Shown piece by piece: positions 1 through 4,260 of a DNA stretch of 64,000 bases. The stretch lies in the IMG/VR virus record IMGVR_UViG_3300047510_001118, positions 214,127-278,126 of that record; one strand, written 5' to 3'. Both the position numbers and the translations under genes were made by a program. The notes beneath the pieces were generated by a model. The model saw only the letters and a program-made list of their open reading frames with translations. It ran no database searches and was not told the DNA's origin. Each line of letters starts with the position of its first letter. Position 1 is the stretch's first letter.

Positions 1-81
1 TCTGAGGAAGAACAAAAAGAAGGAGCACCAGCAGAGTTTGAAGCACCTGTAGTCCTGGACGCATCAAATTTTTTCGGGTAA
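1..81 (+). CDS. C-terminal fragment of a T4 gp26-like baseplate hub assembly / tail chaperone protein (5' truncated by window)
   Basis: Frame 1 reads SEEEQKEGAPAEFEAPVVLDASNFFG* (TAA 79-81). The xxFF(G)* ending directly before a gp51-like ORF resembles gp26 homologues. Only 26 aa visible. Confidence 0.5.
   Translation, partial: SEEEQKEGAPAEFEAPVVLDASNFFG
69..75 (+). other. Candidate -1 ribosomal frameshift heptamer T TTT TTC
   Basis: X XXY YYZ heptamer phased with frame 1. The -1 frame is stop-free from 69 into the ORF at 111. Confidence 0.6.
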
Positions 82-110
82 AGCTCTTTAATCTGCCGCT
101 CGATGAAGCC

Positions 111-305
111 ATGCGGGTGATTAAGGGGCTTGAAAGTGAAATCAAGTCGTTGAAGTTAGAATTATTAAAACTCTGTTGGTATATGAGAGGTGGTATTTCA
201 TTAGAAGAATGTTACAATCTATCATATGATGATCGAGCATTAATTGTAGACATTGTTAAAGAGAACATGGAAACTACTAAGAAATCAGGATTACCTTTCT
301 TCTAA
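111..305 (+). CDS. T4 gp51-like baseplate hub assembly / tail chaperone C-terminal module
   Basis: 64 aa with LxWYMRGGISLEE.YNLSYDDR pattern resembling gp51-like proteins; follows gp26-like ORF; no clear SD before ATG 111. Confidence 0.55.
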   Translation: MRVIKGLESEIKSLKLELLKLCWYMRGGISLEECYNLSYDDRALIVDIVKENMETTKKSGLPFF

Positions 306-312
306 CCTATAT

Positions 313-401
313 AGATGAACTACGTTCATCTGTTCTTCGCTTTCGCTCGAACTATTTCTTCTTTTCTTAACTATTGAACTATTATTAAGTGCGAAGCACT
401 T
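313..401. terminator. Hairpin cluster between convergent transcription units (terminator and/or DNA hairpins)
   Basis: AGATGAAC-tac-GTTCATCT (313-331) followed by a T/C-rich tract; GTTC...GAAC (332-352); AAGTGC-gaa-GCACTT (387-401). Confidence 0.5.
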
Positions 402-404
402 TAG

Positions 405-765
405 TATTATCCAGATTGTTCAGGTCACACTTAGCCCTAGCGGGCTAAGAAAATGAACATTATCCGAGTTGCACAATGTCACACAGCGTTATGGCATTAC
501 AGAGGCGGTCGTCCGGTACCTCGAGCCACGTCTTATCACGACGGCAGGCATATAAATGTACGCTATCACACTTATATCCGTTAGGGAATTACCCTTCATT
601 TAGCCTTTTTAAATTCTTTTCAAACAGCAAAACCAGTTGTATATAGGCATATCTGATCTTCGTCCTGTCAAGGATAGTTGCTGAGTACTCTTAACGGCAA
701 GAGAGTTTCCGTCCCTGCGACTCGTAGTCCAGGTATTAGGGCGCACGACATTGGCCTGCGCGAGC
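405..765 (-). ncRNA. Putative large structured ncRNA directly 3' of the GIY-YIG gene
   Basis: No ORF of 60 aa or more. Visibly more GC-rich than flanks. At least ten nested or serial stems (430-449, 417-422/454-459, 525-545, 550-559/568-577, 583-595, 625-630/678-683, 663-674, 688-703, 714-733, 741-745/757-761). An A.C mismatch on + (556/571) is a G.U pair on -. Confidence 0.6.
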
Positions 766-1212
766 TTATTGACCGTTTAATTTTGCCTGAGCTTGTTCTT
801 GTAGGCGTTGTCGAAGTATGTTTGAACCACCCACTCTAACGTTGATAATGCCGTTATAGTATTCGTCAGATTCTAAAACTCTGCGTTCAAACTGTTCTCT
901 TGCCTCTAAATATGACAGTTCTGCCTTGCTTTTACAGTAGTAAAGTATTTCTCTTGTGAAGTTTTCTGGACCTAATGATTGAACATCTGCGTTTAACCTA
1001 TCAGATGAGCCCCAGTATTCGCGCCAATCGCTTTCTACTGTGCTACGTCTTTTAAGTTTTTTGCCTTTGAGTGGTGGTTTAGTACGTTTGAATTGAGCTA
1101 ATTTCTTGCCTATGTACTTTTGTCCAGTTTTGAGGTTAGTAATGAGATACACAAAGCCAATATGACCTTCTGGTATTTCTTCAACTAAAGCATTTTGATA
1201 GTGCCATGACAT
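766..1212 (-). CDS. Stand-alone GIY-YIG family endonuclease
   Basis: GFVYLITNLKTGQKYIG motif, downstream LEAREQF (Glu) and YYNG (Asn); 148 aa with no obvious NUMOD/HTH DNA-binding extension. Confidence 0.85.
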   Translation of the reverse strand: MSWHYQNALVEEIPEGHIGFVYLITNLKTGQKYIGKKLAQFKRTKPPLKGKKLKRRSTVESDWREYWGSSDRLNADVQSLGPENFTREILYYCKSKAELSYLEAREQFERRVLESDEYYNGIINVRVGGSNILRQRLQEQAQAKLNGQ

Positions 1213-1227
1213 GCTCGTATATACCGA

Positions 1228-1458
1228 TCAGTCACTGTCCTCATCCTTGGTTTTGGTTTTGCCTATAAGTTCTTTACGTTTTGACAGTATTTCTATGCGC
1301 CTTTTAGTAGCCATCTCTCGCACTGTTCTCAGTGCTTCTCTGGCTTCTACACTTGATCCAATGTAACCATATCGTTCAAAGCGATCATTCCATCTACAGT
1401 AGGCAATAATCGCTTTGATCAACTCTTCATGTGTGTCGTTATCGAACTCTTCACTCAT
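1228..1458 (-). CDS. Small helical basic protein, possibly Hc1 / histone-H1-like
   Basis: RFER.G..SSVEAREALRTVREMATKRRIEI resembles the KF..G.KAA..RARKAL.E..K...R pattern; K/R-rich C-terminus. Confidence 0.4.
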   Translation of the reverse strand: MSEEFDNDTHEELIKAIIAYCRWNDRFERYGYIGSSVEAREALRTVREMATKRRIEILSKRKELIGKTKTKDEDSD

Positions 1459-3235
1459 AAATTTCTACATCATTGGCATAACTGGTGAACCCGTTTTCTT
1501 TTACTACCTTGAGCACGTTGTTCACGCGACCCACTAATTCATCCCTATGAGAAATTAGATAGATATTCTTATGTCGTTCACGGCCCATCTTTTTCAAGAT
1601 ACCTAGAGAGTTTTCAACTCCGTTGGCGTCCATGCCCGAATCAATAAGTTCATCTATGAATAAGAGATTGATGTTCTGGTATAACGACTCCCAAACATCA
1701 CGGAACGCCCACGACAATCCTAAGATTAAGCGATTCCTTTCTCCTCGACTCAAGTTATCAAAGTCTAAATCTTGACCGAGTTGGGTTATTTCTACCGTTA
1801 GGTCATTTTGGAATACAACGGTGTGAGGTAGACCCACCTTATCAAGGTAGTAAGTGAGACGATTGTTTAGATAAGCAAGATTTTGGTCAATGATCTTCTT
1901 ACGAATAAACGAATCTTTGTTTGTTAAAAGTTTAAGAAGAAACTCTTGATGATCTTTTACAAGAGTTAAACTGTTTATAGAATCCCACGATACATCCTGT
2001 AACGCAGTATTTTCTAACTCTGTGATCTGTTCTTGATACATATCAGTTTCTTCTTGTTTGGATTTTAGTTGGTTAGCAAGACTTTCCAAATTACTTCTGT
2101 GATTGTATGCTTCATTAAGTGTGTCGTAGAACGTCTGTGGCCGACCGTTGATGTCTCCAATCTGTTCTAATTCTTTAATAATTAAAGTTAAATCGCCTGT
2201 GACCTTGGATTTGTATGTATCCGCATCTAGAAGATTTTTTTCTGCCGCTTTAATCATTTCGTCATGTTTGTGATCATGTAGTTCTTGTTCACAAGCCGGA
2301 CATGTTTTCTTGTCTAATTGTGTTATTTCTTTAGAATATTTCTGTACAGACTTATCAGCCTGCATAACTGCTGTTTCAAGAGTGGCTTTTTCTTTGTTAA
2401 GACTCTTAATTAATGCGGCTTGTTCGTTATAGACTTTGAGTTTTTCGTGTTGAGATATCTCGTTTTCAATGTCAACTTTTGAAAGTTCATCAATGGCCTT
2501 TTCTATTTTTGCTATTTCTGCTTCACGATTCTTTTGCCAAGCACTTTGTTTTAATTTTAAACTGTTAATACTTTCTTGTATACGTTCATTTGACTTTTTA
2601 ACCGCATCAATCCGTATAGTCTCTTGCGTAATTTCGTCTTTGGTAATACGTACTTGTTCTTTTAACAGTTCTGCTTTCTCACTGAGTAGGGTTATTCCTA
2701 ACAACTGTTCAATAATTACTCGTTGATCACCCGACTTCATAGATAAAAACGGTTCAGTATAGGTGTTAAGAGCAATGATATGCTTAAACATATCGTGACT
2801 CATACCAATAAGCTCGTCAATATCTTTCTGTGTTTCTCTGCTGTCGCCTTGCCCTTCGTCATCTACGTCAGCATTTTCCTGTTCTTGATCATCAACATAG
2901 AACTTTAATACGTTAGGCTTACGTCCACGCTCAATTCTATACAATCGTCCATTCTTTTCAAACTCTACACAGACTAACATATTTTTACCGTTAATCTTGT
3001 TTACAAGATTATCTTTTTTAATGTTAGTTAGAGCCTGTCCAAATAAAGCATAACTTAGTGCGTTTACAATAGTGGTCTTACCCGTGCCGTTTCGAGAGCC
3101 GGAATCGTCACCTCCTTGGTCCAAGTTCTCGCCTAATACGAGGGTAAGTTGTTCTTGATTAAAATTTATAGCCTGAGTAGCATTACCCACGCTCATAAAA
3201 TTTTTAACAGTTAAATCTTTTATTTTTATTATCAT
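1451..3235 (-). CDS. gp46: Rad50/SbcC-like recombination ATPase (T4 gp46-like)
   Basis: Walker A (GSRNGTGKTT), coiled coil with CPAC zinc hook, LSRGE signature, Walker B LLFIDE, ISH H-loop. Confidence 0.95.
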   Translation of the reverse strand: MIIKIKDLTVKNFMSVGNATQAINFNQEQLTLVLGENLDQGGDDSGSRNGTGKTTIVNALSYALFGQALTNIKKDNLVNKINGKNMLVCVEFEKNGRLYRIERGRKPNVLKFYVDDQEQENADVDDEGQGDSRETQKDIDELIGMSHDMFKHIIALNTYTEPFLSMKSGDQRVIIEQLLGITLLSEKAELLKEQVRITKDEITQETIRIDAVKKSNERIQESINSLKLKQSAWQKNREAEIAKIEKAIDELSKVDIENEISQHEKLKVYNEQAALIKSLNKEKATLETAVMQADKSVQKYSKEITQLDKKTCPACEQELHDHKHDEMIKAAEKNLLDADTYKSKVTGDLTLIIKELEQIGDINGRPQTFYDTLNEAYNHRSNLESLANQLKSKQEETDMYQEQITELENTALQDVSWDSINSLTLVKDHQEFLLKLLTNKDSFIRKKIIDQNLAYLNNRLTYYLDKVGLPHTVVFQNDLTVEITQLGQDLDFDNLSRGERNRLILGLSWAFRDVWESLYQNINLLFIDELIDSGMDANGVENSLGILKKMGRERHKNIYLISHRDELVGRVNNVLKVVKENGFTSYANDVEIYE

Positions 3236-4236
3236 AGATTATTATAAATTGCCAATAATACTTTGGGATCATAGTTATCGCTTTGTATACTTGCGATTTG
3301 ATTGCTGACAATTTGGTCAATACTTTCAAATTGTTCTACATTTAGATCTGTGTTAATCTCTATTTCTTTTTTCTCTGGAATAAGTGTTAACTCTCTAAGA
3401 TTATTTTGTTTTACAAATGTTTCTTTGATAAAACTTGCCTCTTCAAAACTAATTGGAAGGTCAATACCTACTCTAAGATATGTTTTAGGTAGAATAAGTT
3501 TTTCACTGTTGTCTAATAATTCACTGAGTTTAAGTGTTTTAAATTTAGGAGCATCGTTCCATATCTTATATACCGGAGATTTTCCATGCTCTAAGATCAT
3601 CATACCACGGTCATCGTCCCAGGCATCAGCATAATTGTGCGGAAATGCGTTGCCAATATACACAATATTCTGTTTAGCCTGACGCTTATGGAAGTGTCCT
3701 GAAAACACATATTCGGGATTCTTAAAATGATCTGCCTGTAACTCGCCATGATCTGGCATCTGTACCATAGCATTCATCATAAACAAGGGAAGTTCAAAGT
3801 GACCAAACACATAGCGGCTCTTTAATTTTTCCATTTTACGCCATTCGTCACCAACTAACCACGGGACTAGAGTAACGTCGTCGATAGTTAGTATGTCACT
3901 GACAATGGTGACTCCGGGAATATGGCGTCCCCAGTCTACAGAGTGTACATCGCGTTTATCTTTGTAATATAAATCGTGATTACCGGGAAAGAAAAAGAAT
4001 TGGTCAAAGGCTTTGCCTAATTTTTCTAGGCTTCGAATGCTACTAACCATAGTTAACATATTAAGGCTGTTGCGATTATGATGCCAATCGCCTAGAAAAA
4101 TTCCAGTATCACAGCCTTCTTTTTTAGCCTCAGCAATAAACCAATCTACGAAATCTTCGCAGTCTTGATTATGTGCTGCCGAATTTGATTTTAATCCAAA
4201 GTGTATGTCTGTAAAACACGCAACCTTTTTAAACAT
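3232..4236 (-). CDS. gp47: Mre11/SbcD-like metallophosphoesterase nuclease (T4 gp47-like)
   Basis: DIHFG, GDWHH, GNHD, GHFH motifs. Start set at ATG 4236 using SD AGGA. Confidence 0.93.
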   Translation of the reverse strand: MFKKVACFTDIHFGLKSNSAAHNQDCEDFVDWFIAEAKKEGCDTGIFLGDWHHNRNSLNMLTMVSSIRSLEKLGKAFDQFFFFPGNHDLYYKDKRDVHSVDWGRHIPGVTIVSDILTIDDVTLVPWLVGDEWRKMEKLKSRYVFGHFELPLFMMNAMVQMPDHGELQADHFKNPEYVFSGHFHKRQAKQNIVYIGNAFPHNYADAWDDDRGMMILEHGKSPVYKIWNDAPKFKTLKLSELLDNSEKLILPKTYLRVGIDLPISFEEASFIKETFVKQNNLRELTLIPEKKEIEINTDLNVEQFESIDQIVSNQIASIQSDNYDPKVLLAIYNNL

Positions 4237-4260
4237 TAACAATTCCTATAGTTTTGGTAT

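Follow-up and report, generated by a model that had tools for sequence, protein, structure and literature searches.

A predicted programmed -1 frameshift in the gp26/gp51-family hub assembly gene of Rak2/121Q-like jumbo phages

A baseplate hub gene of the gp26/gp51 family (PF12322) very likely gives rise to both a short and a long protein through a programmed -1 frameshift, as judged from sequence comparison of its slip signal, reading frames and relatives. The gene lies at the start of the DNA analyzed here (the window), 64,000 nt that form the final 64 kb of a linear 278-kb viral record with a completeness rating of about 75%. The sequence of the window recurs across freshwater and lake metagenomes from several studies. 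Short and long tail-assembly proteins made by -1 frameshifting are known; what appears to be new is the frameshift in the gp26/gp51 family and in this clade of jumbo phages. No published frameshift in gp26/gp51 or in a jumbo-phage baseplate gene was found in the literature outside subscription journals. The word "frameshift" does not occur in the genome papers on these jumbo phages that a literature search returned, and neither "gp26" nor "baseplate" occurs in the accessible part of a recoding review (PMC5009743).

The window begins within the gene, and upstream DNA fetched from the record places the start of the reading frame, ORF1, 777 nt upstream. ORF1 matches Pfam family PF12322 (T4_baseplate; E 3e-8, 34 bits against a curated cut-off of 24.5, residues 46-247) and the PHROGs family phrog_150, "baseplate hub" (E 1e-11), and no second PF12322 copy was found in the 278-kb, roughly 75% complete record. 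A T4-type late promoter, TATAAATA, is located at L002 11176-11183, ~824 nt upstream of the window start and ~40 nt 5' of the ORF1 ATG, and GGAG also precedes ORF1. The promoter motif suggests T4-like late transcription in the jumbo clade. The features of this region are as follows.

L002 11224-12081, plus strand: ORF1, 285 aa, with PF12322 and phrog_150 matches; its 3' end is window 1-81, with the TAA stop at 79-81.
Window 69-75, plus strand: slippery heptamer T_TTT_TTC in X_XXY_YYZ phase, one codon before the ORF1 stop.
Window 75-305, plus strand: -1 frame extension, 76 codons plus TAA at 303-305; a conserved protein with HMM matches.
Window 81-131, plus strand: predicted stimulatory hairpin from folding, a 13-bp stem (81-93/119-131) with an inner stem.
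Window 111-305, plus strand: 64-aa ORF with ATG at 111, the gene-caller view of the extension.
Window 311-343, plus strand: terminator-like hairpin by pattern match only, a 10-bp stem (311-333) and then a T-rich tail, TCTTCGCTTT.

Slip site and its conservation

Window 61-81 reads GCA TCA AAT TTT TTC GGG TAA, with ORF1 in frame 1. At T_TTT_TTC both the P-site and the A-site tRNA-Phe are able to re-pair in the -1 frame, which is open from position 42 (after TGA at 39-41) through the 64-aa ORF to the TAA at 303-305, and which reads R-V-K-L-F-N-L-P-L-D-E-A-M-R... after the slip. A sequence-only reading of this DNA had described the end of ORF1, the in-phase heptamer and the open -1 frame in just these terms, and re-reading of the letters found it exact. 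ORF1 residues 1-284 plus the extension make up the predicted 360-aa long form, in which ..VVLDASNFF is followed by RVKLFNLPLDEAMR...

The same reading had proposed that a programmed -1 signal joins the gp26-like gene to the downstream ORF, to be checked by looking for the heptamer and the open -1 frame in homologues. A viral-contig scan with ORF1 found 182 related loci, and the best 80 of these, at 46-99% protein identity, were taken. All 80 contain the in-phase heptamer, 3-18 nt before the stop, and in all 80 a homologue of the downstream ORF lies in the -1 frame, open across the heptamer. Removal of duplicates left 59 distinct junctions (from 84 loci), 56 of them environmental and three from cultured phages. 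T_TTT_TTC in the same phase, with a homologous extension in the -1 frame, is present in 59/59, and the proposed signal is borne out at this level; the 59 junctions are related sequences, and their counts are not independent trials.

The nucleotides of the slip site are held more tightly than the encoded residues. The codon preceding the heptamer is NNT at all 59 junctions, whichever of N, T, D, H or S it encodes. For the second Phe, every junction has TTC, a codon that makes up only 14% of the Phe codons in these genes; other Phe-Phe pairs within the same genes are mostly TTT TTT. Unconstrained synonymous sites should show many changes at 46-67% protein identity. The -1 frame, whose first codon is an invariant Arg (CGN), is a further constraint on the C of the heptamer. 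Homogeneous-pyrimidine heptamers, like UUY codons, have been reported to be shift-prone in Escherichia coli (PMC4066793).

The closest isolates are jumbo myoviruses of the Rak2/121Q/GAP32/PA5oct/Atu_ph07 group. Among ten cultured jumbo phages, T_TTT_TTC is found in eight (Atu_ph07, Phosso, 121Q, K64-1, XbC2, Serratia BF, GAP32 and PA5oct) and T_TTT_TTT in the remaining two (Xoo-sp13 and RsoM2USA), and in all ten the -1 frame continues as a homologous extension (70-82 aa). In 121Q, the predicted trans-frame junction runs ..PSHFFR and then VMLLQSSPEEIQEVLK. None of the ten records annotates a joined CDS; the extension appears there as a separate "hypothetical protein", as a 40-aa fragment, or is uncalled. 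A tblastn search with the Atu_ph07 extension as query matched only four phage records because the extension is too divergent.

A homopolymer sequencing or assembly artefact, or a recent inactivating mutation of an in-frame long ORF, would also separate the two frames, and in-frame long forms do exist in related lineages. Against this, T6C and its frame relation recur in 59 distinct sequences from many metagenomes, and the T6C of eight of the ten cultured genomes was determined by different sequencing groups, the other two having T_TTT_TTT. Contigs assembled over window 1-342 from four freshwater runs, belonging to four studies, agree apart from a few substitutions, none of them in the heptamer, and have no indel in 61-305. 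The agreement of the four runs together with the isolates rules out homopolymer error, and we consider an artefact or inactivating mutation scarcely credible as an account of the site.

The -1 extension and the downstream hairpin

Protein-level conservation of the extension sets in directly at the slip and runs from R-x-R-I-L-x-L-x-x-x-E-I-L.. to ..T-K-K-S-G-L-P-F-F. Every one of the 56 distinct environmental sequences has an extension of exactly 76 aa, and seven residues are invariant (R1, W35, M37, R38, G39, N64 and K69).

The 64-aa ORF is unlikely to be a gene in its own right. Nearly all homologues have Leu or Ile in place of the Met at 111, and the first start-capable codon falls at ~20 different positions among them. 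An ATG is conserved only at codon 37, within the invariant W-Y-M-R-G. Homologues of the 64-aa ORF in databases are called at 40-98 aa with ragged N-termini, because only the codon-37 ATG is conserved and other possible starts are scattered. The ATG at 111 has no AGGAG-like Shine-Dalgarno sequence ahead of it, so that the lack of a clear one noted in the sequence-only reading holds and extends to the lack of a conserved start. Pfam and PHROGs searches with the 64-aa ORF and with the 87-aa open -1 frame returned no match beyond a marginal one to phrog_8170 (E 0.011).

Gene callers and GenBank entries nevertheless treat the downstream frame as a gene of its own (121Q gene 595, XbC2_245, GAP32_242, Atu_ph07 gp687), and the window does offer an ATG at 111. 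Under this interpretation a small gene of 40-64 aa would be translated by its own initiation or by reinitiation, and the heptamer would merely encode a conserved Phe-Phe. T4 gp26 likewise has Phe-Phe near its end, hence the pair is partly a protein-level motif. The T4 pair is written TTC TTT, however, while the jumbo-clade junctions always have T TTT TTC. Moreover, neither a start codon nor a Shine-Dalgarno sequence is conserved, the 36 codons before the sole conserved Met are conserved as protein up to the slip site, and natural in-frame fusions are joined at the same point (see below). A separate gene is highly improbable on this evidence, and a frameshifted extension of ORF1 remains the preferred reading.

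Downstream of the heptamer, the predicted hairpin begins after 5 nt. The 89 nt following the heptamer in the window fold with a minimum free energy (MFE) of -25.0 kcal/mol, compared with a mean of -11.1 for synonymous resamples (z -4.6). Across the 59 junctions, the mean MFE is -18.5 versus -10.6 for resamples (mean z -2.6), and the structure starts 5-6 nt after the heptamer in most; a minority (e.g., loci L005, L022 and L024) fold no better than controls. RNAalifold on 51 aligned junctions from all clades gave no single consensus structure, because the distance to the 3' arm of the hairpin differs among clades (~25, 40 or 60 nt). After this result, subclades were tested separately. In a ten-sequence subclade that includes Atu_ph07, a 15-bp helix has 92% of its cells paired and five pairs in which both partners have changed; none of 500 shuffles did as well, and sliding the partner by 1-3 columns reduced pairing to 27-54%. 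A second subclade again contains compensatory changes, with a weaker result. A frameshift stimulator under coding constraint would be expected to look like this, with a stem that moves yet is maintained and keeps its distance from the slip site.

The hairpin also bears on whether the shift takes place on the ribosome. RNA polymerase could produce the same fusion by adding or dropping a U in the T6 run, so that the mRNAs themselves would carry joined frames. The site is a homopolymer, with nine T in RsoM2USA and seven in Xoo-sp13, and since such transcriptional slippage yields the same protein, comparative data alone cannot separate the two routes. However, a run of six T is shorter than those known to give appreciable slippage by bacterial polymerases, which counts against this route. 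The exact X_XXY_YYZ phase is kept although it is irrelevant to the polymerase, and the hairpin stands at the spacing of a ribosomal stimulator and has compensatory changes. The fixed phase and the hairpin favor slippage on the ribosome, and we regard the transcriptional route as quite unlikely.

In-frame long forms and the T4 gp26/gp51 pair

An HMM of the extension was compared with 1.84 billion representative proteins and gave 463 matches, most of them to short ORFs called on their own. About 19 matches are to proteins of 319-351 aa that end in the domain: it makes up their last 76 residues and continues the frame of a PF12322 body. The junction in these proteins, ..D-L-D-x-S-x-x-F-R-N-K-I-L.., lies at the place predicted from the slip (window ..V-L-D-A-S-N-F-F followed by R-V-K-L-F..), and the predicted 360-aa product of the window is 32% identical to two of these natural long forms over ~350 residues. 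An AlphaFold model of one natural long form (pLDDT 90, pTM 0.84) predicts a mostly helical extension consisting of a junction helix, a 30-residue helix and a small helical end. In BFVD, this model matches predicted gp26/gp51-type proteins of many myoviruses (E down to 1e-17); Foldseek searches of the PDB and AFDB Swiss-Prot and a wide VIA-align search found nothing beyond a generic helical hairpin. The four cysteines of a zinc ribbon (CxxC...CxxC) are invariant in the in-frame long forms and present also in 121Q, Atu_ph07, PA5oct and T4 gp26; ORF1 and the "short" paralogues lack them.

Two lineages with long forms (L106 and L109) were read at contig level. As in the window, a portal gene and a gene for a ~830-aa protein are followed by divergent PF12322 genes, and a related contig has GIY-YIG and Rad50/Mre11-like genes, again as in the window. 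The long gene carries the same 76-aa domain as the window's extension. Unlike the window, these lineages have two tandem PF12322 genes, a short one (287-297 aa) and a long one (331-342 aa), which are paralogues with 23-34% identity, and neither contains the slippery heptamer. The short genes end in ..SNFMS* or ..ADFFQKK* and have no slippery site. By contrast, a single PF12322 copy is present in each of seven frameshift-type records searched whole, four of which are complete (the window's own record, complete Atu_ph07, 121Q and PA5oct, a 354,680-bp relative rated 100% complete, and larger fragments). At the sequence level, one frameshifted gene is equivalent to the two-gene arrangement.

T4 was searched in the same way as the frameshift records and has two PF12322 copies. 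T4 gp26 (208 aa) and gp51 (249 aa) each span the whole PF12322 profile, and are therefore paralogues. Like the two forms predicted for the window's gene, they are a short/long pair differing by a C-terminal extension. T4 gp26 ends ..K-E-F-F-E-L-L*, its F-F occupying the position homologous to the end of the window's short form; at the aligned place gp51 reads ..D-V-F-K-L-L-V-N-P-D-E-I.. and then continues for ~48 residues, versus 76 aa in the window. In contrast to the single gene of the window, 26 and 51 are two distinct genes with divergent transcription, and the end of gene 26, ..GAG TTC TTT GAG.., is not slippery. With TTC TTT and divergent genes, T4 is unable to use the frameshift device.

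The relationship between the two extensions was approached by several alignments. BLASTP of the extension against T4 gp51 gave no match. An alignment of jumbo extensions compared by hhalign with 12 gp51 C-termini gave a weak match over 28 columns (P 9.5e-4, probability 22%); smaller alignments had given P 0.027. In the profile alignment, the gp51 extension (RGGISLEECYNLSYDDRALIVDIVKENM) falls on the distal half of its jumbo counterpart, and the same register is obtained by eye. Aligned with gp51 by hhalign, the whole fusion gave no global alignment, and local mode reached the C-terminus weakly. A region search with the T4 gp51 C-terminus returned only three close relatives (precomputed Pfam PF28602). 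These results are suggestive, but not proof, of a relationship between the gp51 extension and the jumbo extension. The downstream ORF had been called gp51-like in the sequence-only reading. The label does not fit the 64-aa ORF as such, which has no Pfam, PHROG or BLAST match of that kind, but it receives some weak backing for the ~48-aa C-terminal extension of gp51. The counterpart of gp51 would be the whole predicted 360-aa frameshift product, and the 64-aa ORF is probably a gp51-type extension, not a gp51 homologue.

In a maximum-likelihood (ML) tree of PF12322 bodies, unrooted and with long branches that meet, gp26 and gp51 of T4 and T4-like phages make up a single group (100/99) outside the jumbo clade. 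For the in-frame long forms, the position inside the jumbo clade is basal or unresolved. The frameshift genes cluster (95/89), and this cluster also takes in the two "short" paralogues, which sit on a long branch. Duplication probably happened separately for the T4 pair and for the jumbo two-gene pair. An earlier suggestion that this lineage "retains" the frameshift presumes a direction of evolution that the tree does not settle.

We tentatively propose, as a view for which the odds are somewhat against, that gp26/gp51 is the T4-type counterpart of lambda G/GT. The ancestor of T4-like and Rak2/121Q-like myoviruses would already have needed short and long forms at a set ratio, a need met interchangeably by -1 frameshifting or by duplication, with separate duplications in T4 and in some jumbo lineages. 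If so, the long-puzzling "catalytic" gp51 of T4 would be a GT-like long form. The roles of gp26 and gp51 in hub assembly, long unclear, would be those of one assembly factor in its short and long versions, which is a testable reading. All single-copy jumbo phages of the group would share a previously unrecognised, clade-wide recoding event. Apart from this proposal, the comparison offers a clean natural example of frameshifting and gene duplication as alternative routes to the same protein pair. It also corrects the annotation of a core structural-assembly gene of a large jumbo clade (including 121Q/PBECO4, RaK2/K64-1, GAP32, PA5oct and Atu_ph07), to which phages under study for therapy or biocontrol belong.

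Predicted role, known frameshifts and gene surroundings

We propose the following course of events. The late-expressed PF12322 hub assembly gene would give two proteins with a common N-terminal part of 284 residues. For most ribosomes, reading TTT TTC GGG TAA would end translation with the 285-aa short form. Some would pause over T_TTT_TTC owing to the hairpin 5 nt downstream, and the two tRNA-Phe would slip back one base, so that reading would proceed as CGG GTA AAG... for 76 further codons to the 360-aa long form. By analogy with lambda G/GT and T4 gp26/gp51, the short and long forms would act jointly as non-virion assembly factors for the hub and the tape-measure core, with the extension serving as an extra contact and the slip rate fixing the short:long ratio. 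That both forms are assembly chaperones is a reasonable inference from this analogy and from T4 genetics, one that we hold somewhat more probable than its opposite.

Both T4 proteins are listed as hub assembly chaperones, and gp51 is required yet absent from the particle (PMC3004832); GenBank MN709128 labels gp26 and gp51 "tape measure protein assembly chaperone". With their separate, divergent genes and the non-slippery end of gp26, the description in the sequence-only reading of genes 26 and 51 as a proposed chaperone pair made without frameshifting was broadly right. In the PA5oct record, a neighboring structural protein is marked as identified by virion mass spectrometry and gp336, the ORF1 counterpart, is not, a pattern that is weakly consistent with a non-virion role of the gp26-type gene.

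A conserved -1 frameshift in tail genes is established for lambda gpG/gpGT, P2 E/E+E' and Mu-type chaperones (Xu, Hendrix & Duda, 2004, as summarized in PMC5009743). Like lambda G/GT, the window's gene is a late tail-morphogenesis gene with two predicted products (285 aa and 360 aa) that share an N-terminus, and the slip lies near the 3' end; its T4 homologues are assembly factors reported as absent, or doubtfully present, in the virion. Unlike the lambda, P2 and Mu chaperones, the body is a much larger PF12322 protein of ~285 aa. Also unlike lambda, the gene stands alone, divergent from a 786-aa virion structural gene, and not between tube and tape-measure genes. There is no tape-measure gene directly downstream on the same strand, where a terminator-like hairpin, a ~460-nt gap and opposite-strand genes are found. 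For the tail tube protein (PF06841), the record of the phage has only a sub-threshold match, in a 470-aa ORF. Similarity to the chaperone family was found neither for ORF1 and the extension in Pfam or PHROGs nor for the long-form model among solved structures. The gene is predicted to work like lambda G/GT, from which it differs in gene position and in the outcome of the fold searches for that chaperone family.

The E. coli dnaX gene (tau/gamma) also relies on a -1 slip at an X_XXY_YYZ heptamer with a hairpin downstream. In contrast to the window, the dnaX slip yields the shorter product and uses an upstream Shine-Dalgarno-like stimulator; no conserved upstream element of this kind was seen at the jumbo slip site.

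ORF1 adjoins the divergent 786-aa gene, whose sole match is "virion structural protein", and genes for portal, protease, scaffold and major capsid lie farther out. On its other side, the terminator-like hairpin comes directly 3' of the stop codon of the extension. A separate observation concerns the portal gene of the P0121 contig (GCA_015689235.1), which encodes 1015 aa with an intein (PF14890) inside the T4 portal domain.

Between the extension stop and the next gene, on the other strand, are ~460 nt with no convincing ORF (window 305-766). A similar unannotated gap of 700-800 nt follows the same gene in 121Q, XbC2, Serratia BF and GAP32. At window ~480-540, the summed depth of Logan contigs from four freshwater runs rises 10-100-fold, to ~3460, and many of these contigs run from this segment into unrelated sequence on both sides. 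The rise in depth and the unrelated flanks indicate a short element common to many different genomes in lakes; the segment is not repeated elsewhere in the phage's own record. On the minus strand, window 622-766 matches Rfam RF01718, "Polynucleobacter-1 RNA", strongly and over its full length (105 bits, gathering score 37, E 2e-23) and lies directly upstream of a 148-aa GIY-YIG-like ORF (766-1212, minus strand) that matches homing-endonuclease PHROGs. The position of this phage copy ahead of a homing-endonuclease-like gene may be a clue to the role of the orphan motif.

Farther along the minus strand, window 1451-4242 contains genes for Rad50-like (594 aa) and Mre11-like (336 aa) nucleases, in the order Mre11 and then Rad50. 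This would be the opposite of the T4 order, in which gene 46 comes before gene 47. A Rad50/Mre11-like pair is also found near the hub gene in Atu_ph07, 121Q and one related contig.
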